Assembly: GCA_965240325.2 (NCBI GenBank)
Contig: OZ251233.1
Span: 620,001 to 684,000, forward strand
Direction: 5' to 3'
Source of the DNA: Rebecca billardiae RCC1528
Taxonomy: Eukaryota > Protista > Haptophyta
Length of the DNA: 64,000 bases
Positions 80 to 64,000 of the stretch are shown here, piece by piece. The position numbers and the translations under genes are program-made. The stretch's first letter is position 1; every line of letters begins with the position of its first letter. Under the pieces are notes generated by a model, which saw only the letters and a program-made list of their open reading frames with translations, made no database searches and was not told where the DNA came from.

Positions 80-358
80 ACAACCCATCGACGAGCGGCG
101 AACACGGCGCGGTGGGCGAGGGGCTCACCGCTGCCCTTTCTCCGGCCCGGTAGCTCTCCAAGCAGAGCGCATTTTGCCTCTCAAGCCAGCGCGGCTGAAA
201 CAGCGGCGTTGTCCGGATGGTGCAGCCAGAAGGAACCGGACTCTGCCGCGCTGGGCGTCGGGCGCGCGAGGTGCTGTGCGTGCGGTGCGGGCGTTGGTCG
301 ACCCGCGCAACCGTCGCGCAACACCAGGCCGCGCGAGCAAACGCCTCGCGCCTCGGAG

Positions 359-2257
359 ATGGAGGAGTTCTTCGGCGACTTCTTCGAGAAGATCGGCGAG
401 AAGGACAAGAGCCTCGTCGACGCCCCGCGCGACGTCTTCCAGAAGCAGGTGCCGCCCCCGCGCAACGTGGCGGCCGGCGAGGCCGAGCGCAAGCCCAAGC
501 CCAAGGCCAAGCCCGCCGCCTCCGCGGCCAAGCCGTCGGCGCAGGGCGGTGGCGGCGAGAAGGCGCGGCAGCGGAAGCACGCGTACGAGTACTTCAACGA
601 GTGGGACAAGTTCGACGTGGACAAGGAGCTCGCCGCGCTCGACGAGAGCGCGGGCGGCGGCGACGGCTCGGCGAACGCCGACGGCAAGGGCGAGACGGTG
701 TACGGCCTCGGGCTGGGCGACCTCGACCGGCTGCCGCCGGCGCACCGCGCGCAGATCGCGGCGGACGAGAAGGCCAAGGGCAACGAGTGCTTCCAGGCCA
801 AGGAGTACGTGCAGGCCATCCGCCACTACACGACGTCGCTGCGGATCGACCAGAGCGCCGCCGCGGTGTACGCAAACCGCTCGCTGGCGTTCATCAAGCT
901 GCAGCGCTGGCGCCCGGCGGAGACGGACGCGAGCGCGGCGCTCGAGATCCAGGCGGACTACACCAAGGCCCTCCTGCGCCGCGGCATCGCGCGCCTCCGC
1001 CTCGCCAAGCACGAGGAGGCGATCTCCGACTTCCGCGCCGTGCTGAGCCAGGAGGCGGGGCACCGGGAGGCGCACGACTACCTGCGCGCGTGCACCATCG
1101 ACCTGGAGCGCGAGCAGAAGGAGCGGTCGGAGGCGAAGGAGGCCGCGGCGCGGCTCGACGCCGCGGCGAAGCCGTCCAAGCCCGCCACGCGCGGCGCCGC
1201 CGAGCGCCCGCCGCCCGGCAAGCGCGTGATCATCGAGGAGATCTCGAGCTCGGACGAGGAGGCCGAGGCAGAGCAGGCGAGCGGCGACGCGTACGACTCG
1301 GACGCCGAGCAGCCGAGGGAGGGCGCGGGCGGCGGGGCGCGCGGGGCGGCGGCGGAGGCGCTGGGCGCGGAGGCGGCGGCGGCGCGCGCGCGCGCCAAGG
1401 CGATCGCGGACGAGGCCGACGCCTCCGCCCGCGCCGAGGCGGCGCGCGCGCGCGAGAACGAGGCGGAGGGCGTGGCGGCCAACCGGCCGTCCCACGAGCG
1501 CATCCAGGCCGAGGCGGAGTCGAAGGGGTTCCTCGACGCGCTCTCGTCGCTCTCGCTCAGCTCGCTGGGGATGAGCAGCGCGAAGGCCCCCGAGCCCAAG
1601 CCCGAGCCGCCCGCGCAGCCGCCCGCGCCCAAGCCCGCCGCCGCGGCCGAGCCGGCGCGCGGCGCGCCGGGCGAGCGCAGCTTCAGCGCGGCCGGCGCGT
1701 TTGTGGGCGCGCGCGCGGGCTGCGTGTTCAAGAAGGGCGCGCACGGCCTCGGGTACTACGCGGACGAGTGGGCCGCGCGCAGGCACGCCGAGGAGGAGGC
1801 GGCGCGCGCGCGCGCGCCCATGCGCCGCGTGCTCATCGAGGAGGACGACGACGACGACGAGGAGGAGCAGGCGGCGGCAGCGGGCACGGCGCGCGCGCCC
1901 AGCGGCAAGGGCGGCAACGGCGGTGCGGACGCGAGCGCGGACGGCTTCGAGATGGTGTCCAAGCCGAGCACGCCCGACGACGAGGGCAACGTGCGCGCCG
2001 ATGCCGCACAGCCGGAGCCGCCCAAGCCGGCCGGCAGCGCCGGCGGCATGCGCAAGCTTCAGATTGAGGAGGACGAGGAGGAGGAGGAGGAGGCGGCAGC
2101 CGCGCCGTCCGGCGCGGCGGCGGCGGCCGGCGGTGCCGCGCGCGCGCACCCCGCGCCGACGGCGCAGGCGGGCGGCTCGGCGCAGGCGCAGCCGGCGGCC
2201 GCGCACGGCGCGGCGGGTACTGACGGCCGCAGCGGCATGCGCAAGCTCGTCATCGAG

Positions 2258-2288
<31 letters not shown>

Positions 2289-4747
2289 TGGAGGCGGAGG
2301 CGACGGCAAGGACCGTCGCCGCGGCGGCCGCCGCGGCGCCACCGCCCACCACCGCCGCGGCCGGCGCAGGCGGCGGCGCGGCCGCGCCCAGCCCGCCGTC
2401 TCTGAGCCCGGCCGAGGCCGCGGCCCTGGCCGAGGCGGACCGGCTGCGCCTCGACGCCAACGCGCTGTACGGGCGCGGGCAGACCGAGGCAGCGCGTGAG
2501 GCCTACTCGGCTGCCCTTGAGCAACTGGCGCGCTGCGGCGCGCTCGTCTCGAGCGAGTGCGACGGGCTCGCTGCGGGGCGCGTGAGCTGGGCGGAGCGCG
2601 GGGCGGACGGCGGCGCCACCCCGCCCGCCCTCGAGGAGTGCGCCGTCAAGTGCCTCAACAACCGCTCGCTCTGCTCCGCGCAGCTGCACGCGCACGGCGC
2701 GGTCGAGCGAGACGCGAGCGCCGTGCTGGCGCGCCGCCCTGAGAACGTCAAGGCACTCGTTCGGCGCGGGCTGGCGCTCGAGGCGCGCGAGCGGTTCGCG
2801 GACGCGCTGGCGGACATGCGCGCCGCGTTCGCGCTCGAGCCCGGCTGCGCGCCCGCCTCCGACGCGATCGGCCGGCTGCGTCGGTACGCCAGCCTCAACA
2901 GCGCGGCCTCGCCGCTCGAGCCGAGTGCGCCTCACAAGCCGAGCGCGCCGCCGGCTGGGGCGAGCGGGCAGCGGCCGCCGGCCTCGGCCTCGGCCACGCA
3001 GCAGAAGGCGGCGGCGGTCGGCTCGAAGGCGGCCGGCTCGAAGGCGGCGGCTCCGCGCGCGCCCGCGCCAACCGAGCCGCCGCCGCCGCCGCCCTCCAAG
3101 ACCGCCCCCGACTCGTCCTCGTCGGCGCGGGCGGAGGCGGAGGCGGCGCGCGCCGCGCAGCAGCCCAGTGCGGAGGCGCGCGCCGCCGCGGCCGCAGCGC
3201 TCAAGGAGGGCGGCACCGCGGCGTTCAAGCGCGGCGAGTTCGACGAGGCGGCGTCGCTGTACGCGCGCGCGGCGGAGGAGGAGCCGGAGCGCGCCGTGCA
3301 CCACGCCAACCTGTCCATCGCCTCGCTCAAGGCGGGCAAGCTGCCGGAAGCGCTAAGCGCGGCGCGGTGCGTGCGTGCGCGCCGCCCGCTCGCGCGCGCG
3401 TGCGCGCCGCGCGCGCGCGCGCGTGGGCGGCCGTGCCGTGCGCCCGCTCACGCGCCCGCGCCCCGCGCGCACACGCGCGCGCGCGCGCACGCGTGCCCCT
3501 CCGCAGCACCTGCACGCAGCTCGAGCCCGCGTTCGCCAAGGGCTGGTACCGGCTGGGGCAGGCGCACCAGGCGCTCGGCCAGCTGGGCCAGGCGGCCGCA
3601 GCGTATGAGCAAGGCCTGAGGTGCGCGCACGTGCTGCGGAGGGGCGAGGGCGGGCGGGGGCGGGGGCGTGGGGTGTGGGCTGCGCGCCCGGCCGGGCGCA
3701 GTGGCGCGCACGCCGCGCTGACACGCGCACGCGCGCGCGCGCGCACCGCCGCCTCGCAGGGTGGCGGACGCGCCCGCGATGCGCTCCGAGTTTGAGCAGG
3801 GGCTGCGCGCGCTGCAGCAGATGGGGCTGGGCAGCGCGCACGCGGACGAACGGCTGCGGCAGGCGGAGCGCCGGGCGGCCGCGGAGGAGGAGGAGCGCGC
3901 GCGCGCGTCGGCCGAGGCGGCGGCGCGCGCGCGCGCGAGGCGCGAGGCGGAGAGTCGGCGCGCGGCGAGCGCGGCGGCGGAGGAGGAGGAGGAGGTCGAG
4001 GACCTGCCGCGCGCGCCGGCGCGCGCCAGGCCGGCGGCGCCGCCCAAGCAGCCGGAGGCAGCGCCCGTCCTCGCTGCGAGCGCGCCGCCTGCGCCGACCG
4101 AGCCCGCGGCGCGCCCGCCACCGCTCAGCTCGGCCGCGGCAGCCGGCGCGCGCGCCGCCGGCGCCGCGGCCGGCTCGCCCAAGGGCTCGCCCTCGACGGC
4201 AGGCGGCGGCGCCCAGCCGGCGGCGCCGAAGCGCGCGCCGGTCTCCTACGAGGCCGCCGCGCAGATTGCTGAGCGCGTCGCTCAGTCGCACTCGGCCAGC
4301 TCGCCGACCGCGCCGATCGCGGCCGCCGCCGCTCGGCCGCCGCCCGGTGCCAGGCCCCGGACCTGCACCGAGTTTGAGCGGCAGTGGCGCGCGGCGTGGC
4401 CCGCCAAGGGGCGGACGGACGCGCACGTCGACGCGGCGGCCGCGCTGCTCGAGCTCCTGCCGCCGGCCGAGCTCGCGCCCTTCTTCGGCGCGGGCATGAG
4501 CGACGAGATCTTCGAGGGCCTCCTCGGGCACGCGGCCGCGCGGCACGCGCGCGCGCGCGCCGACGACAGCGCGAGCGCGCTCGCGCTGCTGTGCGGCCTG
4601 GCGCGCGTGCGCCGGCACGACGTGCTGTGGATGTTTGCGGGGGATGCGGCCAAGGCGGCCGCGCGCGCGCTGATCTCCGCCGGAGGCCAGCCCGCGGCGC
4701 CGTTCACCGACGCTGACGTGCAGCGCGCGCGCAGCGTCTTCACCTGA
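359..4747 (+). CDS. Multi-TPR co-chaperone, RPAP3/SPAG1-like (exons 359-3366, 3507-3620, 3760-4747)
   Basis: Three TPR clusters (EKAKGNECFQAKEYVQAIRHYT..VYANRSLA; CLNNRSLC..NVKALVRRGLA; KEGGTAAFKRGEF..AKGWYRLGQA), an N-terminal YEYFNEWDKFDVD motif and an RPAP3_C-like segment (PRTCTEFERQWR..LARVRRHDVLWMF). GT-AG introns 3367-3506 and 3621-3759 join the frames cleanly. Confidence 0.85.
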
Positions 4748-34329: not shown

Positions 34330-34416
34330 GTCTGACGCCGGCGCGCCGCCGTGCTGGTCCGGGCCGGGGGGTGGTCCGGTCGGCGCACGGTGGCGAAAAA
34401 CGACCGGCCCCGGGCG

Positions 34417-35889
34417 ATGGGCGCTCTACTGCGCCCTCGTCAGACGGCCACCAATGCTGGCGCATTGGTGGCGGTGGCGGTGGCCTTCTTCGCCGCAGGC
34501 GCACTGGTCACGCATGCGTATCATCACATGCGCGGAATCCCCGGCTCGACAGCTAGCCCTATGGCGCGCGCACTTCAGGAGGTCTCGGCGCCAGCCATGC
34601 TGAGGCCATCGTTGTCTGGCGACGTGGCGTGCGGTGCGCACGGCGTGCTCTGGGAGGGCGAGCGGCGGTGCTCGTGCTTTGGTTGTGCCCGTGGGCCGCT
34701 CTGTGCGGCCATCGACGGTGCACACACGGTGGGTGCGCGCTGCATCCTCGACGCCCGATTCGGTCAGCCCACCATGTTTGAGGACTATTGGCGGCACGCG
34801 GGGGCGCGCAAGACGTGCGTTGCAGCTGAGCACAGCCTGGAGTACGCGCTCACGGGCCAGGCGATGCCGCGCCTGATCAAAGCCATCGAGAACGTGCACG
34901 CACTAGCTGGGAACGTTCGGCTCGACGGCAACACGAGCATCATCGTCGGCATCGGGTCGTTGTCGCTCATGCAGGCAGCCATGGCCGCCGGGGCCGGGGC
35001 CGCGAGCAGCAGGGGACGTCTCTCTGCGCCCCCGACCGACGTGTGGGCGCCCCCGCCCTACTTTAGCAACATCGTGGACTCGTGCATCCACCTCGGCGCG
35101 CGCGCCCTCAACTGCACGCACGTCGGTCGGCCTGAGCCTCCAGCTGGCCGCGCGCGCGCCCCTCCGCTCGTCGAGATCGTGACGAGCCCGAACAATCCGG
35201 ACGGCCGGCTGCGCACGCAGCGGAGTTCGCGGGCATCGGTCGTTGTGCTCGACCACGCGTACATGTGGCCGCACTTTACGCCCGTGCACGCCCCAGTCAC
35301 CGTCACCGATCCCGAGCAGGTCGCCCTCTTCACGCTGTCCAAGCTCACCGGGCACGCGAGCAGCCGGATCGGCTGGGCTGTGGTGCGAAAGGGCTCCAGA
35401 CTGGAGAGCCTGCTCCGCGCATTCGTCGCGCGGTCGACCGTCGGGATCCCTCGCGACGCGCAGCACCGCGCCGTTGCGGCTCTCGAGGCGATGGTCGCCG
35501 ACCGTGGAGGCGCCCTCCACTGGGCGCAGCAGACGATGGCTGCGCGGTGGCAGACGCTCGCTGAGATCTTCTCTGCGCACGCGCCGCCGCCGGCGACTGG
35601 CTCCGCCTTTCGGCTCCAGCAGCTCGAGCCGGCCCGACTGGACCGCTTCCTGCACACGGTGCGGCAGCCGTCGCCGGCGTACGCGTGGCTCGAGCGGATC
35701 GACGGGCAGAGTGCGCACGTGGCCCTGAAGAAGGTTGGCATTCTTGCGCGGCCCGGCACCAGCTTCGGCAGCGAGCAACGGTTTGCGCGACTGTCGCTGC
35801 TGATGCGCTCGACGGAGTTTGACGTGCTCGCCAGGAAGCTGCGCCAGCTTGGTCCCGCGGCGCGCATTACTGTCACTGAGCACTCATAA
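34417..35889 (+). CDS. Alliinase / tryptophan aminotransferase-related (TAA1/TAR-family) PLP enzyme with EGF-like domain, intronless
   Basis: N-terminal hydrophobic anchor, Cys-rich CGAHG..CSCFGCARGPLC, GQPTMFEDYW, EIVTSPNNPDG, DHAYMWPHFTP, and the PLP-lysine motif FTLSKLTGHASSRIGWA. Confidence 0.9.
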   Translation: MGALLRPRQTATNAGALVAVAVAFFAAGALVTHAYHHMRGIPGSTASPMARALQEVSAPAMLRPSLSGDVACGAHGVLWEGERRCSCFGCARGPLCAAIDGAHTVGARCILDARFGQPTMFEDYWRHAGARKTCVAAEHSLEYALTGQAMPRLIKAIENVHALAGNVRLDGNTSIIVGIGSLSLMQAAMAAGAGAASSRGRLSAPPTDVWAPPPYFSNIVDSCIHLGARALNCTHVGRPEPPAGRARAPPLVEIVTSPNNPDGRLRTQRSSRASVVVLDHAYMWPHFTPVHAPVTVTDPEQVALFTLSKLTGHASSRIGWAVVRKGSRLESLLRAFVARSTVGIPRDAQHRAVAALEAMVADRGGALHWAQQTMAARWQTLAEIFSAHAPPPATGSAFRLQQLEPARLDRFLHTVRQPSPAYAWLERIDGQSAHVALKKVGILARPGTSFGSEQRFARLSLLMRSTEFDVLARKLRQLGPAARITVTEHS

Positions 35890-36096: not shown

Positions 36097-37949
<1,853 letters not shown>

Positions 37950-38155
37950 TACAGTGGGCGGTTCCCACTGGGGGGCCTGCAAAACAACCGCACCCGGATC
38001 TTGGCGAAGCTTCGGCGGCTCGAGAGAGGCCTCGGGAGGCGGCTGGAGGGCGTCCCGCGAGGCAAGCGCGGGCGCTGGGGCGCGAGGCGAGTGCGAGTCC
38101 GCCGCGTGAGCCGGCGGGGAAGTGAGCGCCACGAGTTCTGAGGCGAACCGGAGCG

Positions 38156-39321
38156 ATGGCGGACGCGCGCAAGCGCAAGACCCCGCCGAATCGCAGCGAC
38201 TGGTACCGCGACCAGAGGCACAAGCCGGGGCCGACGCCGCGTGCGCGCTCGCGCGGCGCGCCAACCGTGCGTCCGCGGGGTGCAAAATCGGGCACGGTGG
38301 TTCCTCACGAGTTACTGTGAGCAACACGCTCCAGAAATTCCGCTTCAAAACGCCCGCCGGAAGCGCGGTCACCATACCTGACATCTGCTGCGGCGCCCCT
38401 TGCGCCGATCCGCCGTGCGCAGGGCCCAAGCCGCCGCGGACTCCGCGCCCGCGCGCGGAGTGGGAGCAGCTCGTGCAGGAGCAGATGCTGGACTCGGACG
38501 CGGGGGACGAGTCGAGCGCCACGTTCTGCACCCACTGCATGCGACGTTCCTGGGAGAAGACGGCCACGGTGCGGGTCGGCTGTCTCTTGCGCGAGTTGTT
38601 CTCGGAGATGGCAGCCAAGATGAGGCTGCCGCGTGGCAACGTCGTGCAGGGCGGGCGGGTGCAGCAGACGGCGTTGAAGAAGGTAGTGATGAAGCACGTC
38701 TCGCTCCACACGGCCTTTGGCATGTTCCGCGCCTTGGGCCCGTTCTCCCGCTCGCACACGAAGAGCTGCGGGCCGCGGGCGATGCGCCTCGTGCACTCGT
38801 GGGCGGTGACGTCGGCGGACAAGGTGGCCGAGTTCTTCACGCTGGAGGCGAGCCACTACATCCTCTCTCGGCGCACGCGGGGCCCGGCGAAGGTGCTCGG
38901 CTCGCGCAAGGCGCTCGTGGCCGCCCTGATCCCGCCGATCAAGATCGTCCACGTGCAGTGGATGGATCGCAACGGCCCGTACCGGACGGTGCTGAAGGTG
39001 ATCTTTCGGACGGCGTGGGTCACGGTTGCGCGGCAGCCGGCAGTGCACCTGCCGACGGAGATTCTCGGTGCGCGCTCGCGGTCCGTGCGCGCGCGCGGCG
39101 CGGAGCAGCAGCGCTCGCTCCACCCGTGGGCCAGCGGCTGATGATCGCCCGCCCCGCGCCCCCCCCCCCCCCCCGCGCGCGCGCGCGCGCTCGCAGCGGA
39201 GCTGTCGGAGGCGGAGGTGGCCGAGCTGAAGCAGTACATGGTGGAGCGCCTGCAGCATCTGGCGGAGGCGAAGCTGGTGACGATGCCGACGGCGGCGGAA
39301 GCGGCCGGCGGACGATCCTGA
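38156..39321 (+). CDS. Transposon ORF1 or N-terminal part of the transposase; Cys-rich, intron 39068-39196, start uncertain
   Basis: The frame of ORF 38122-39141 has CCGAPC..C and FCTHC. GT-AG splicing adds [29 protein letters not shown] 38156 (MADARKRK) is in another frame, so one more intron or an indel is needed. Confidence 0.5.
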
Positions 39322-39446
39322 GGAACGCGAGCGGCCGTTTCCAATCGCGCAAGGCGCACGAGCTCGCGGAGTCCCGATCGAGGTCGCGCTCGCGCTCGCC
39401 CTCGCGCTCGCGCTCGACGTCGCTCTCGGAGGAGTGGGACGGCGCG

Positions 39447-41502
39447 ATGCCGACGCGCGCCGCGCTCGCGGCCGCGCACACGAAGTATGAGGACGCGCAG
39501 GCGGACTTGGAGGCGTCCAGGCTGCAGGTCCACCTCCACGAGGAGCGCATCAAGGAGCTCGAGCGCGATCTCACGCACGAGCGCGGCATCGCCATCGAGC
39601 TGCGCCGCCGCCTCGCCTCTGAGGAGGAGCCGGCCGAGATGGACCCGACCGGCGCGCTCGACGCGCTCGTGCGTGCGCGCTACGAGTGCCGCGTCGCGGA
39701 GTTGGAGGAGAAGCTGGCCTCTGTGAATGGGGACCTGTCCGCGGCGAGGCGCTCGGCGGCGATGACGGGCAACCAGCGCGCGCTCAAGCGCAACGAGCCC
39801 GGCGCCGACCTCGACCTCTCGGACAGGGCGTGGCTGCTTCGCGAGGAGAAGGCCGCGGACGCCATCACGTCGCTCGGCCTGCACAAGAATGGCGACCGTC
39901 TCGTGAACACGCTGCGGCGCGCGCAGGCTCTCGAGGAGATCGAGAACGCGAAGCACTTCGTGAGGCGGTTCTACGAGGTGGCGGCGGACGTGGTGTCGAC
40001 CCTCGCCAACACGTGGGCGACGCCGTGGCGGTGGCTGCGCGTCAACCAGTTCGGCCCCGGCACGACCAAGGAGCAGCGCGGCTTGATGCGGCGAGCGATC
40101 TCATTGGATTGGGTCGTGAACGAGGCGACGGGCAAGGGCGAGTACCGGCCGATCAAGCTCTTCGAGAACGCGTGCGGCTCGCTCTACATGCCGATGATGG
40201 CGGGCGACTACCTCTACGACCGGTACCGCGCGCGCGTCATCTCGCAGCAGCCGTCGTTGACCAGCGCATCCGACGGCTCGGCGGTGGGCGGCCTGTCGCT
40301 GTGCGACATCGTCTTTGGCGTGCACTCGGCCGCGCACGACGTCGCCAAGCGGCAACTGCGGAAGTCGTTCCTCGGCCACCTGATGATGCCGCTCTACATC
40401 GCGCTCGCTGGCGACGGCAAGCCCCTGGACCGCTTCACCGACGCCGACACGGCCGACTTCGTCCACTTCAGCGCGTCCGCCGCCAACTCGGACCTGCCGC
40501 AATCCTTCGCCGCGAGGATCCTGGCCGGGATGCACTACGGGCACGAGGCTCAGGACGGCTCGCGCACGGTGCTCGGCCGCGCGGCAGAGGACTTGCGCGA
40601 GCTGATCGAGGACCAGCGCGACGAGTGGATGAGGACGAGGACGCTTTGGATCGAGAACGACGACCACGAGCGCGTCTACTTCTCGCCCTACCTCTGCGGC
40701 GACCTGCCTTTCCTCCGCATGATGCTCGGCCTCGGCGCGCACGGCTCGCCGCACAAGCTCGGCCTCCTCTGCATGTGCGACCACTCGCGCGCGTCGACGG
40801 ACAACTACTACCCGCCCGAGCCCGAGCTGGCGACTTTCACGGTCGAGACGCTGAAGGGCTGGTTCGAGAAGGTGCAGTGCGAGCTCATCGCCGAGGGCAC
40901 GCGGCTCGACGCCGCGCACCTGCCCAACCCGAATCGCGTCTACCCGTGGTTCTGCAAGCTCTGCGAGCTCAAGTTCTCGAGCGACGATGACCTCGCGGAC
41001 AAGCTCGCTGCCGTGCTCGCCGACCGGCACAAGTGCGAGATGTTCCGCAAGCAGCACTTCGCGCACGAGCCCGGCATGGGGTCTGTGTTGCCCGGCATCG
41101 ACGGCCAGAACACCGTGCCCGACTACCTGCACGCCTTCTTCCTCAACCTCGTCAAGCTCGCGCTCGAGTGGGGCGTCATCCGCGTGGCGTCGGACGCGGC
41201 CGACATCGACGCGATCAGCGCCGTGCTGAAGTCGAAGGGCGTCAACGTCATCAAGAAGAAGAAGGACGACGACACGGCGCGCGCGGTCCCGATCAAGGTG
41301 CCGACCCGCGGCGAGGATGGCAAGCTGATCCTCAAGCACCACGCCGAGCTCGTGCCGCGGCTCAACGCCGCGCTTCGCACGTCGTCGTCGACGGCATCGA
41401 GCGCCGCGGCGCCCGCGGCGCCCGCGGCGTCCGCGGCGGCGCCCGGCGCTGGGCGCGGCGCCGCGCCCGCTGTGGGTGGCGTGCGTGACGACGGCGGCGG
41501 GC

Positions 41503-41551
<49 letters not shown>

Positions 41552-42344
41552 CGGGCGGCGCGCATCTCGCGAGGAGGAGGGGCTCGGCGCGCACTTCACG
41601 CCACGCGCACCACCGAGCGGTGGCGGCGGTGCTGTTCCGGCGAGCGCGTCAGCTGCGCGTGCGAGCGATGAGCGCGACGTGAACGACGCGCGACGCATCG
41701 AGCTCTTCAAGCAGCTGGCGCTCATGGCCGCGGCGATTGAGGGGCCGCACGCCGACGACGCAGCGAGGCGTGCGGCGGCGGTCTGCGCCTTCCAGGCCGG
41801 CGTGCGCGCGCACCGCGCCTACCTCCACTTCAACCGCTCGCACGTGTCGAACTACTGGCACATCTGCGTCTGCGGCATGGTCCAGCTGATGCTGCGCGGC
41901 GTCGACGTGAAGTCGTTCGCGTGCTACGGCAACGAGAACGTCGGCCGCCTGCTCGGGACCAGCCTGCACCGTCACGCCGCGCATCATCGCTCGACTACGT
42001 ACACGCGCGGCGGCCAGACGCGCGAGCGGAAGAGCCGCGCGATGCAAGGCGTCGACGCTGCGCGGGTCGGCATGGCCCTTGCGCGGTCCAACGTGTGCGT
42101 CACGACGCCGGACTCGCAGCCTAGCTTGACTCGGCCGGCGAGCTTCACGCCGACGGTGCTGCCCGATCCATCGGCTCGGCGCACGCCGAGCACGCACCGC
42201 GCGCCAGGTGCGCAGTTGCGCGCGTCACCTCGCGCGCCCCGAGCGCGCGCTACGAGCTGTACGGGCTCGGAAGCTGACAGCATCCCCGCGCCCGGCGCCG
42301 CGACCGCGACTCCGCGCACAGGCTCGGGCCCCTCGGAGAGCTGA
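39447..42344 (+). CDS. DDE transposase of the RAG1/Transib/CMC group
   Basis: IALAGDG (D at 40413); YLCGDLPFLRMMLGLGAHGS..LLCMCD (D at 40701); VPDYLH (41121); SNYWH..KSFACYGNENVGRLL (E at 41934). These parallel RAG1 CDG, GYDEKLVREVEGLEASGS..CTLCD, DALH and NYFH..SEGNESGNKL. N-terminal coiled coil. Confidence 0.8.
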
Positions 42345-42537
42345 TTTTCGTCCGCGCGCTCTGCTGAAGTCGCGCTGGTGAGCTCAGACGTCGGCGCGTA
42401 CCCCGCCGGCGCTAGTCTGTCGCACCCCTTTTTGTTCCGAGTCGCTCAGACCGCGCCGATCGTCAGATAGTTTTGAATTTCGGTTCCGCCACTGGGACCA
42501 GCCCACTGTAATATATATATATATATATATGTATGTA

Positions 42538-44486
42538 CCAGGTCGTTCCCCCTGCACTGGGAATCCGCGGTTTGGACATACGAGAAAAACAGCCGCAGGA
42601 CGCACCCGTCGCTACCCGCGAATAAGATTTTCAGGTCTCGCGGGTGCGGATGTGCGTCAATCGATGAGCTGGTCTCGCAATCCCAAAATTGAGCCGCAAC
42701 GAGATAGAAGGCAGGGCGGAGCCCCCGGTGGCGGCTCGGCAGGCGAGGGCCGACCAAATCTTGACCTTTTGCCCTCGGCGGCAGGCGGGCAGCGGCAAGG
42801 CGGCCGAGCGCCGTTGGCGGGGCGCGCCCGGGGCACGCCGCACGGCGCTGCGGGCGCGGATGTGCTCGCGGAGCCGGCTTGCGTGGACAGGCTGTCGCGG
42901 GAGAGTATCTGGCGCCCTCCTGCGCCGCGCGTCTCGCGCCACGCCTCTTTTCGCCGCGGCTCAGGGCAGCGCGCACGCGCGCGCCGCCTCGAGGCCCGAG
43001 CACTGCCGCGCCGCAGCCAACCGCGCGCGCGCCGTGCGCGGCGTGGTCGGGAAGGAACGGGGGGTGCTGCCGGGCGAGATGACGACATCATGTGCGCACG
43101 CCATGCCGCCCCGCGGCGCCGCGAAAGGGCACGATAACGGATCCGCACAGCTGTTGACGAGTGCTGCTTTCTTGTCGTGCCTGAAGCCAGACCTGAGCTC
43201 GAAGAAGATGATGAAAGTGCATCCGCGCGAGGAAAGCGTCGCACCCAGCACTTCTACATGACCACGCAGTGATGAACATTCATGTAAGAGTTTCCCGCGT
43301 GCCCGTCTGGCACTGTTCTGTGTCTCAATGATCGTCCCGACAAGGCGGTCACGACCGCGAGGCCGCGTGCACACCATTTGTGACAACTCGAAGAGGCGTG
43401 CAAACGGACCGGCGACACGCTCGGCAAGGCGTGGCGGGGCGGCATGGCGTGCGCACATGATATCGCCATCTCGCCCGGCAGCCGCGCCCGTTCCTTCCCG
43501 ACCACGCCGCGCACGGCGCGCGCGCGGTCGGCTGCAGCGCAGGCAAGGCTGGCCTTGAGGCGGCGCGCGCGCGTGCGCGCTGCCCTGAGCCGAGGCGAAA
43601 GAGGCGTGGCGCAAGTCGCGCGGCGCAGGAGGGCGGCAGATACTCTCCCGCAACAGCCCGTCCACGCACGCCGGCTCCGCAAGCACATCCGCGCCCGCAG
43701 CGCCCTGGCCCGGGCGCGCCCCCCAGCGGTCACGACCGCGAGGCCGTGCGGCACACCTGACACCATTTGTGACAACTGGAAGAGGCGTGCAAACGGACCG
43801 GCGACACGCTCGGCAAGGCGTGGCGCGGCGGCATGGCGTGCGCACATGATGTCGCCATCTCGCCCGGCAGCACCCCCCGTTCCTTCCCGACCACGCCGCG
43901 CACGGCGCGCGCGCGACCGGCTGCGGCGCAGGCAAGGCTGGCCTTCGGAGGCGGCGCGCGCGTGTGCGCTGCCCTGAGCCGAGGCGAAAGAGGCGTGGCG
44001 CAAGTCGCACGGCGCAGGAGGGCGGCAGATACTCTCCCGCAACAGCCCGTCCACGCACGCCGGCTCCGCGAGCACATCCGCGCCCGCAGTGCCCTGGCCC
44101 GGGCGCGCCCCCCAGCCGGGGCCAGCGGCATCGCACTCGTGCCCGGCCGCAGCCGCAGGGGGCGGGTCAGAATCGGTGCTCCGCACCCGCGGCGGAGGGC
44201 TCCCGCCTCCAGGTTGCACACGAAGAACTCATTTCCAGCGCATCGATTTCGTGAGCGGACTATCGCTGACGAGGCTGATTACTGCGTTCCACGGCTTTGC
44301 CGCGCTCGGGATTTGGCTTCTCCAATGGATGGATCTAGTTTCGTCATTTTCAATTGGAAAGCTCGATTAGATCGTTCAAGTGGTCTGATAGACGAAGCGG
44401 AAGACTAAATCTGCGTTGCTATGCCGCGGCCTCGCGCTCTGAATAGGGCGAAACCGCGGATTCCCAGTGCACGGGGAACGACCTGG
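42538..44486. mobile_element. Non-autonomous TIR element (1949 bp), 36-bp TIR with one mismatch, TA TSD
   Basis: TA|CCAGGTCGTTCCCCCTGCACTGGGAATCCGCGGTTT ... AAACCGCGGATTCCCAGTGCACGGGGAACGACCTGG|TA. The interior ~42836-44100 is homologous to the 15181-16291 element. Confidence 0.9.
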
Positions 44487-62000: not shown

Positions 62001-64000
62001 CGCCGCGCGCACCCTGCTTCATCACCAGCGCGGAGATCTTGCCCACCGCCCACGCGTACACCGTCAAGTTCAGCACCATCATCAGCAGCGTGATGCCCAC
62101 CTCGACTGCTCGGCGCGGCGGCGGTCGGGAGCGCGAGAGTGCCACGCGAGGGCGCGGCGCGGACGCGAGCACACGGTCGTGAGTGCCGCCCCGCGTGGCC
62201 GCAGCGCGCGCGCGCGCCGGCGCGCGGCGTGCTCGCGCGGCGTACTGTAGTTCGCCGGGATCGTGGCCATCCCCAGCGTGGTGAGCGTCGAGTAGACGTA
62301 GAACGTCGACATGATGTACCGCACGAGCAGCTCGACCTCGGCCGAGCCCTCGGCGGCCGCCGAGTCTGCGAGCGTGTCGCCGCCCGCGTCCAGGCTCAGA
62401 AAGTCGTGCTGGTCCTCCCAGCTCTTGAGGCCGCCGGTGGCGAACGGCGTCGTGAGCAGGTTCCACACGCACGCGCAGCAGTGCGCCGTGATCGAGATCA
62501 CCGTGATGTACTGCACCAGCCCGGTGAGCAGGTTGTCGCCCGTCTTGGAGCGTTCAAACGCGATGTACGATCGGTACACGTACCGCAGCTGCAGCAGCTT
62601 CACGCTGCGCAGCCCGACGAGGACGAGGCCGCGCACGCCGAGCATGAGCGCGAAGAGGTCGTGCGGCCACGCCGCGATCAGGTCGAGCGTGAACTCCGAG
62701 CCGAGGTACTGCCGCCGCACGGCCCGCGGGTCCCACACGTGCACGCTGTTCTCGTTGAGGTAGCTCGTGCGCAGCCGCAGCAGCACGCGCGCAATGTACA
62801 GGGCGTCGAGCGCGTAGTTGACCGGCCAGATCCACGCGATGCGGTCGGCCTGGTCGGAGTAGCACAGGTGGACCGACGTCTGCATCGCGTCCCACATCAG
62901 CGCACAGAGGAAGAGGTAGTTGAAGCCGATGTACTTGAGAGACGTGTGGTCGATCACAAACTTGTGCGTCGCGGCGGCGCGCGAGTCGGCCTCAGAGGTG
63001 GCCGCGCTCGAGGACTGGTGAGCCGCGCCGATGATCGAGTGCACCAGCTGCTGGAGGGCGTGGCCTGCGCGGGCCAGGATGCTCGCGCCGGCATCAGGGG
63101 GCGCAACGCCGCCGCCCTCCGCGCTGGCCTGCGCTCGCACTTGCCGCGTATGCGCCTCGAGCGCGCGCGCCACATCAGCCCACGTGGGGCCCGCGGCCGA
63201 GTCGCTCGACTCGGCCGCGGCGTCGGCGCTCGCGACCTCTGCAGCCTGCGCCTTCTCGGCCGCGCCCGGCTTGGCCCCGTCTTTGCCCGCCGAGTTCTTG
63301 CCCTTGGAGCCGCCATCGGAGCCCGACTTGAACGGCGGCGCGATCGGCAGGCTCAGCCCGAGGTGCGCCGTGCACCACGCCGCAATGTCATCAGGCTCCG
63401 CCTTGGTGGCCGTCTCGGGCGACATGGCGAGCAGCTGCGCGAGCCGGGTCGCGTTCGCCGGGCCGAGCTCGTTGAACACGCCGCTGGACACGCGCTTCCG
63501 CAAGGCCTTTGTCGCAGAGGCGCAGCCAGGCGCGCTGCTCAGCAGGCGCTCCAGCTCCACCAGCCCCGCGGACTGCGCACCCTCCTGAGCTGGCTTGCTC
63601 GTGATGTTGGCCGCACGGATGCCGCCGCCGCCGCCGCCGAGCGCGAGCTTGGGGATGCCCTCAGGCCGTGTGCTGGCCGTGCCCGACGCCGCGCCGTCCC
63701 CGCCGCCACCGAGGACCACGCCGCCGCCCTCGGTGAGCTCGGTCGGCTCGTCGTCGTCCGCGCTCGACAGGATCCACGCCGTCGCGCCCACGTAGAACTC
63801 GGCGCGCGAGACCGCCTTCGACCGCCCCGTGCGATTGTGGTCGGCCGACGCGGACGGCAGCTGCGTGTCGGAGCTGCGTCTCTCCCTGCCGCCATTGAGC
63901 TGGGCCGACTCGCCGAGCGTGGCGAGGGTGGACGCGGCGCGCATCAGGTGCGTGACGAGCGACCTGATCTCCGCGGAGCCGAGCTCGCCGAGCGAGCCCT
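59092..64000 (-). CDS. Shaker-like 6TM ion channel with cyclic-nucleotide-binding domain and ankyrin repeats (plant AKT/SKOR architecture); 5' end beyond the window
   Basis: S1-S6 helices, pore STLTTLGMATIPAN, C-linker (MPIALQIEV), CNBD (GDTLGELPFVFSLRH) and ankyrins (GDYDHRRPIHVAA, NYDGRTALHLAA). Introns 62106-62245, 61852-62012, 61066-61221, 60783-60916, 59825-59955 and 59239-59355 all keep frame to the TGA at 59092. Confidence 0.9.

Follow-up and report, generated by a model that had tools for sequence, protein, structure and literature searches.

The locus considered here, positions 37950–42510 of a 64,000-nucleotide stretch of contig OZ251233.1 from Rebecca billardiae RCC1528 (the whole stretch is hereafter denoted the window, and positions refer to it), raises the question of which transposon family can combine catalytic motifs reminiscent of RAG1 with termini embedded in a TA microsatellite. 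An initial interpretation made from the letters of the DNA (the sequence-only reading) had described an apparently complete, RAG1/Transib-like transposon of an undescribed lineage. Our analysis indicates that the locus is probably an intact transposon encoding a DDE (Asp-Asp-Glu) transposase, which represents a rare and unnamed family forming an unassigned lineage of the CMCT clade, distinct from canonical Transib and RAG-like elements. The CMCT clade comprises EnSpm/CACTA, Mirage, Chapaev, Transib, Plavaka, ESTA, Lanisha and RAG1; its lineages share RAG1-like motifs, with C(2)C and H(3–4)H located between the second catalytic Asp and the Glu, and mostly have CA..TG termini and target-site duplications of 2–5 bp (Kojima, PMC12730594).

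The element is ~4.6 kb long and is bounded by a 22-nt terminal inverted repeat (TIR; coordinates of all features are given in Table 1). A degenerate 22-mer describing the repeat, TACAGTGGGCKGKTCCCASTGG, has two exact matches in the window, one at each border and in opposite orientations, and none is expected by chance (100 shuffles of the window), for which reason a chance inverted repeat was rejected. The two arms are identical at 19 of 22 positions, and a weaker similarity extends inwards to a CAAAAC block at both ends. Each end begins with TACAGTG, which matches six of the seven positions of the heptamer CACAGTG found in recombination signal sequences (RSS) and at Transib-type ends (CAC-type, that is CACAATG/CACAGTG-like); alternatively, the TA at 37950–51 may belong to the duplication, in which case the element begins CAGTG. 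CAAAAC occurs 10 times over both strands of the window. The left end, with its heptamer and a CAAAAC block at 23 bp, resembles the RSS23 layout. With the (TA)n tracts of both flanks read directly, the ~22-bp repeats and TA flanks of the sequence-only reading are borne out, and its proposal of an apparently complete, TIR-bounded transposon is supported: the region apparently is an intact-looking, autonomous cut-and-paste DNA transposon.

The transposase open reading frame (ORF) has a strongly coding-like composition, with G+C contents of 0.92–0.96 at third codon positions (GC3) versus 0.42–0.52 at second positions (GC2). The coding signal in this frame begins near 39324, upstream of the ATG at 39447, and the true start may therefore lie upstream of that ATG. 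Codons for the proposed catalytic residues D323, D419 and E830 were read directly at 40413, 40701 and 41934 in the uninterrupted frame, as originally reported, and all three residues are kept in every family lineage that covers them. Their contexts vary across the family: the first Asp lies in GDG, GDA, ADA or MDG, the second in GDL, GDN or ADK, and the Glu in [NL]E. The CMCD, DYLH, NYWH and WFCKLC..QHFAH motifs and the RGG (Arg-Gly-Gly) run are all present in the ORF.

The altered metal site of the sequence-only reading stood in part. C444 is invariant and CxC occurs in all family lineages; the HxxxC component (HICVC) is peculiar to the window copy, and where RAG1 and CMCT proteins carry H(3–4)H only Y..H is kept in the family, the second His being absent in all lineages. 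Both of the additional features that had been proposed, the CxxC..HxxH block and the RGG-rich insertion, were found in the ORF. The columns C503, C506 and H537 of the former are invariant, and the CxxC...H unit gave a weak profile match to PRDM9-type C2H2 fingers (E 0.0097). An RGG-rich loop is found at an equivalent position in the window copy and in P0007 and P0008; the P0002 lineage, the fourth to span the region, has no RGG run there.

A phmmer search of 1.84 billion representative proteins returned eight matches at E ≤ 0.001 (best 7e-21, at 36% identity), all from JGI/ENA metagenomes, Logan assemblies or MMETSP transcriptomes; the MMETSP members imply transcription of one or more relatives in a cultured marine protist. 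The transposase itself has no Pfam match. No meaningful Pfam domain was found in these relatives, the sole match being a sub-threshold DUF4090 (E 0.074) in one protein. The lineages are only 22–31% identical to one another, yet the DDE triad, CxC, CxxC..H, DxxH and Y..H are kept. Judged by these sequence comparisons, the family is rare, previously unnamed and known only from marine metagenomes and transcriptomes, in line with the earlier claim of an undescribed sequence family. A scan of metagenomes for further relatives yielded only two contigs of the P0002 lineage, and a scan of viral contigs yielded none.

The link to RAG1 and Transib derives from motif order and from comparisons of predicted structure. 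The family alignment used for structure prediction was 12 sequences deep. When the core model was compared exhaustively with 48,161 PDB cluster representatives using VIA-align, the six highest-ranking matches were all RAG1, BbRAGL or HzTransib (Z 8.4–9.8): mouse RAG1 (6cij, Z 9.8), zebrafish RAG1 (6dbi, Z 9.6), amphioxus BbRAGL (6b40, Z 9.6; root-mean-square deviation (rmsd) 4.0 Å over 195 residues), two further RAG1 entries (4wwx, Z 8.8, and 6oem, Z 8.7) and HzTransib (6pqn, Z 8.4). The rmsd values for these six were 3.7–8.0 Å over 148–207 aligned residues, those for the four with most residues aligned being 4.0–8.0 Å; generic helical bundles follow at Z ≤ 7.4. Model residues 274–683 (423–832 of the protein) pair with residues 707–962 of mouse RAG1 in the register predicted from the motifs, which positions D419 beside RAG1 D708 (the alignment starts four residues after D419) and E830 beside E962. 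This result carries weight because the six leading ranks all go to separate clusters of a single family and because the register matches the motifs. Two ESM protein language-model feature searches agree with it independently of the structural model. The best named clusters were RAG1_RNase_H/ZnC2/ZnH2 (score 0.94, up to 172 shared features), Transposase_21 (CACTA) came next among named clusters at 0.92, and the top unnamed cluster includes Basidiomycota proteins. A RAG1/Transib-type zinc-binding insertion fold is thus supported, at the level of prediction, for the region between the second catalytic Asp and the Glu. The model, although of low confidence, runs strand (339–342), strand (357–362), helix (372–397), strand (409–417), D419 and helix, which is the RNase H order, and we infer a complete RNase H core.

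Several observations weigh against placing the protein with RAG1-fold transposases and against regarding the element as fully defined. Pfam searches at E up to 10 with nine family members found no match to RAG1, Transib or CACTA. Nor was RAG1 or Transib recovered at E up to 10 when PDB sequences were searched by phmmer and hmmsearch with the whole protein, with family, core and C-terminal profiles, or with a 61-residue piece from the second Asp to the CxC; only low-complexity RGG and C2H2 matches were returned. The AlphaFold model of residues 150–900 is poor, with a mean predicted local distance difference test score (pLDDT) of 43 and a predicted template modelling score (pTM) of 0.41, and Z values of 8–10 are within the chance range for helical models. 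D323 and the rest of the first half of the RNase H domain have no structural match, and the strand bearing D323 is not confidently modelled. The defining C(2)C and H(3–4)H motifs do not occur literally. Only one copy is present in the window, so that ends, duplication and activity are all deduced. The fold comparison suggested by the sequence-only reading gave a divided answer: with Foldseek nothing in the PDB was significant and mouse RAG appeared at rank 26, while the exhaustive search placed RAG1, RAGL and Transib in the top six. Of the RAG1/Transib likeness claimed at the outset, the motif order and the predicted fold between the second Asp and the Glu stand, the latter through the top six matches and their register; a link at the sequence level was not found.

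These data bear directly on whether the protein belongs instead, as a very divergent but true member, to the Transib/RAG1-like superfamily proper, either within Transib or as its sister. All the top structural matches are RAG1, RAGL or Transib, RAG1 clusters score above CACTA clusters in the feature searches, and the TACAGTG ends, with CAAAAC 23 bp inside the left one, approach CACAGTG at six of seven positions. No CACTA-type structure is among the matches, however, and structure search therefore probably cannot separate Transib from CMC; we know of no solved CACTA-type structure. Among true Transibs, the reported duplications are of 5 bp, of 3 bp or TA, and termini beginning with a base other than C occur (bioRxiv 10.64898/2026.08.26.747230). 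Published RAG-like and Transib proteins, on the other hand, were found by homology search (PMC9435367), whereas the family described here has no HMMER or Pfam similarity to RAG1 or HzTransib, carries CxC rather than C(2)C, lacks the second His, and occupies a site to which a 5-bp duplication does not fit. We consider membership of Transib proper unlikely. A more far-reaching version, in which the family is a superfamily-level lineage with a RAG1 fold near the base of Transib plus RAG1 in unicellular algae, having a rebuilt metal site, a C2H2 finger, an RGG loop and a partner module, appears improbable to us; if true, it would be informative on the RAG1 core before the acquisition of RAG2.

Because the insertion site is a dinucleotide repeat, the length of the duplication cannot be read uniquely, and ends and duplication are taken from one insertion, a single copy in a mutable microsatellite. 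If the ends are TACAGTG...CACTGTA, duplications of 0, 2 (AT) or 4 (ATAT) bp each restore a perfect (TA)n tract, and excision of the element together with one AT copy leaves an uninterrupted tract. Termini of CAGTG...CACTG would make the duplication TA, at the cost of a TT/AA phase break in the restored site. Duplications of 3 bp and 5 bp do not fit: the five bases flanking the element are TATAT on one side and ATATA on the other, which allows even lengths only, and this copy consequently does not show the canonical 5-bp duplication of Transib and RAG-like elements. A 2-bp duplication is the most likely reading of the site.

Tracts of (TA)n with at least four units make up 0.39% of host bases in the window and hold 10.7% of the TA and 6.3% of the AT dinucleotides of that host DNA. 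One landing in a tract of this kind favours a preference for TA/AT dinucleotides over a random choice of site, and is silent on microsatellite targeting. With 10.7% of TA dinucleotides in the tracts, a plain TA/AT preference would explain the landing in (TA)n; the TA-repeat targeting of the sequence-only reading, which would depend on this one insertion, is accordingly not supported. No second copy of the element or of a related ORF lies within the window, no empty site was recovered from public-run contigs, which break at the microsatellite, and no terminal repeats were seen on the metagenome contigs that carry relatives. One public run contains, at low depth, fragments identical to the element and also more diverged fragments. 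A contig of that run (X1) links 41783 to 42221 through 16 other letters and lacks the segment encoding E830; another copy in that sample, with an internal deletion, may be its source.

A 2-bp duplication also invites comparison with the described CMCT lineages that make one, namely ESTA, Mirage and PlavakaA, of which PlavakaA has 2-bp duplications and ESTA, an EnSpm-like group of the Pucciniales rust fungi, has TA duplications, its only link to RAG1 coming from HHpred (PMC12730594). Taking TA as the duplication gives CA..TG termini, as in the description of ESTA, the link of the present family to RAG1 is likewise through structure-based comparison, and the top unnamed ESM cluster contains Basidiomycota proteins. 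Membership of one of these lineages nevertheless appears quite unlikely: ESTA is known from rust fungi and the host here is apparently a GC-rich alga; no Plavaka, KDZ or Transposase_21 match was found in Pfam; and the described lineages retain C(2)C and H(3–4)H (PMC12730594), which this family does not. By comparison with the ESTA description, the element also differs in having no TET/JBP gene and an ambiguous duplication (AT or TA; 0, 2 or 4 bp).

A further possibility is that a Tc1/mariner-type shell provides the TA-flanked CAGTG ends, or that these arose by chance, and that the ORFs are captured or host genes and not the element's own transposase. Tc1-like elements typically combine a TA duplication with CAGTG termini. 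The TA duplication has likewise been noted as a Tc1/mariner-like signature (bioRxiv 10.64898/2026.08.26.747230). Against this, the element has no Tc1/mariner domain anywhere by Pfam, the ORF has a conserved DDE triad and RAG1-like fold signals, and the TIR is far beyond chance, so that this explanation is very improbable. Tc1/mariner identity as such was rejected, as no such transposase or helix-turn-helix domain is found in any ORF of the element. Assignment to CACTA/EnSpm likewise failed (no PF02992 match, termini that are not CACTA, and a site to which 3 bp does not fit), as did assignment to KDZ/Plavaka, no such Pfam domain being present at E up to 10.

Having weighed these alternatives, we return to the unassigned CMCT lineage. 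Its likenesses to that assemblage are a DDE transposase with a long, Cys/His-bearing insertion between the second Asp and the Glu that is RAG1-like by structure-level comparison, and an element of ~5 kb with TIRs, what is most likely a short duplication within the 2–5 bp range and, if TA is the duplication, CA..TG termini. It differs in having C(1)C in place of C(2)C and a single conserved His in place of H(3–4)H, in its additional C2H2-like finger, RGG loop and upstream module, and in lacking detectable similarity to the Pfam models of those groups. With Transib, HzTransib, RAG1, ProtoRAG and AanRAGL it shares the predicted fold from the second Asp to the Glu, the motif order GD ... C.C ... 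DxxH ... Y.H ... NE, a terminus that is heptamer-like if read as TACAGTG, and an A-rich subterminal block. Unlike them it has an altered metal site, no 5-bp duplication that fits and no sequence-level homology, and the spacing of its subterminal blocks is 23/28 in place of 12/23.

Precedents exist for each of the features that the sequence-only reading took as signs of an undescribed kind, namely a TA duplication, ends other than CAC and a non-animal host (PMC12730594, PMC9435367, bioRxiv 10.64898/2026.08.26.747230). Oriex, a Transib of Bactrocera dorsalis that is 63% similar to canonical Drosophila Transib, has an apparent TA duplication (bioRxiv 10.64898/2026.08.26.747230) and demonstrates that TA duplications, and termini with a first base other than C, are compatible with a RAG1-family transposase; no such similarity is detectable for the family described here. 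An active RAG1L/RAG2L transposon occurs in the pelagophyte alga Aureococcus, and Transib-like proteins occur in plants, fungi and bacteria (Tao et al., PMC9435367). The proposed separation from described families has to be given up to this extent, that the element falls inside the named CMCT assemblage, though inside no family testable by sequence.

A mechanism can be proposed on the model of HzTransib and RAG. The transposase, probably dimeric, would bind the TACAGTG-type ends and the subterminal CAAAAC blocks, nick at the element borders and release the element via hairpins formed on the flanking DNA. The 3′-OH ends would then be joined to the target with a short stagger, most likely of 2 bp at an AT or TA dinucleotide; the element described here would have landed in a (TA)n tract. 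The upstream module, the C2H2-like finger and the RGG-rich loop are family-specific additions, probably functioning in DNA or RNA binding or in regulation.

The upstream coding module had not been mentioned in the sequence-only reading. It is homologous to ORFs situated directly upstream of related transposases (BLASTP 3e-20 for contig L001, 150–875; 6e-10 for contig L003, 640–1431) and is hence syntenic in two other lineages. A putative intron (39068–39196), if spliced, joins the module in frame to a short helical exon, and a second possible intron (39277–39353) would fuse the module to the transposase frame. The module could constitute an ORF1 of its own or supply the 5′ exons of a single long transposase gene. 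No Pfam match was found for it, its best language-model feature score was 0.87 with no useful lead, its model is poor (pLDDT 50), and structure search on that model gave a best Z of 5.2 with no informative match. In contrast to RAG-like transposons, no RAG2-like gene was identified in the element, and a RAG2-like propeller partner is not supported for a module of ~200 residues with such a model. In the P0002 lineage (contig L001) the module occurs twice in tandem (150–878 and 983–1711) before the transposase gene. A C16 homopolymer followed by (GC)n lies at 39163–39190, inside the GT..AG interval.

The element represents a new sequence family within the known CMCT assemblage, with a transposase whose architecture is most likely that of RAG1/Transib-CMC, and not a canonical Transib, a RAG ancestor or a new class. 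It is distinctive in its lack of detectable sequence similarity to described families, its CxC with a single His, its C2H2-like finger, its RGG loop and its upstream module. It adds to the diversity recognised in the group of transposons from which RAG1 arose, and leaves the picture of RAG origin unchanged. Since neither Pfam nor ordinary sequence searches reveal the family, elements of its kind probably escape annotation in protist genomes.

Table 1. Features of the element and its flanks, in window coordinates (residue numbers refer to the 965-residue ORF product).
Feature	Position	Strand	Remarks
Left flank, (TA)n microsatellite	37832–37949		118 bp, with TATG-interrupted repeats at its end
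Candidate AT duplication copy, left	37948–37949		
Left TIR	37950–37971	+	Begins TACAGTG; pattern match, 0 expected
Subterminal CAAAAC block, left	37980–37985	+	23 bp inside left heptamer
Upstream coding module	38422–39067	+	Frame 1; motifs PRGN, RGPAK, PPxxIxHVxWxD; GC3 0.935
Putative GT..AG intron	39068–39196	+	Predicted from sequence; coding-like GC3 resumes at 39199–39318 in the same frame
Transposase ORF	39447–42344	+	965 residues, uninterrupted; N-terminal coiled coil
D323, proposed first catalytic Asp	40413–40415	+	GAC; LYIALAGDG; kept in all four lineages covering D323
D419, proposed second catalytic Asp	40701–40703	+	GAC; context GDL; directly after predicted strand
CxC (C444, C446)	40776–40784	+	At the place of the RAG1/Transib/CMC C(2)C zinc ligands
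Embedded C2H2-like zinc finger (C503, C506 ... H537)	40953–41057	+	Invariant columns
DxxH (D559, H562; DYLH)	41121–41132	+	Invariant in nine sequences
Ala/Pro-rich then RGG-rich disordered loop	41364–41726	+	Between DxxH helices and C-terminal helices; pLDDT <35
Y803-W-H805 (NYWH)	41853–41861	+	Y invariant in eight sequences, H in seven of eight
E830, proposed catalytic Glu	41934–41936	+	GAG; context GNENV; invariant in eight sequences
Subterminal CAAAAC block, right	42470–42475	-	28 bp inside right heptamer
Right TIR	42489–42510	-	Pattern match
Candidate AT duplication copy, right	42511–42512		
Right flank	42511–42538		(TA)n at 42511–42530 (~20 bp), then TGTATGTA

Two contigs with P0008-type genes show further features of organisation. 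On L002, of the P0008 lineage, a chromodomain ORF (PF00385; 2938–3900, minus strand) lies tail to tail with the transposase and is followed by genes with histidine kinase-like and response regulator-like motifs, for which no Pfam match was recorded; this region may be cargo or a neighbour. L006 (7951–9441) and L002 (86–1578) are 99.7% identical over only 1.49 kb within the P0008-type gene, with divergent sequence to either side, which suggests rearrangement or truncation of copies, or chimeric assembly.

The window has a G+C content of 61–80% almost throughout. A host gene on the plus strand (34351–35886), ~2 kb to the left of the element, has a strong alliinase / class I–II aminotransferase match (Alliinase_C, E 7e-64); other host genes in the window encode a tetratricopeptide repeat (TPR) protein (209–3616) and an ion-transport protein (62082–63944, minus strand). 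A tandem array at 43371–44116, some 860 bp beyond the right end of the element, contains 1.9 copies of a 389-bp unit (95% identity), and long, GC-driven ORFs traverse it on both strands.

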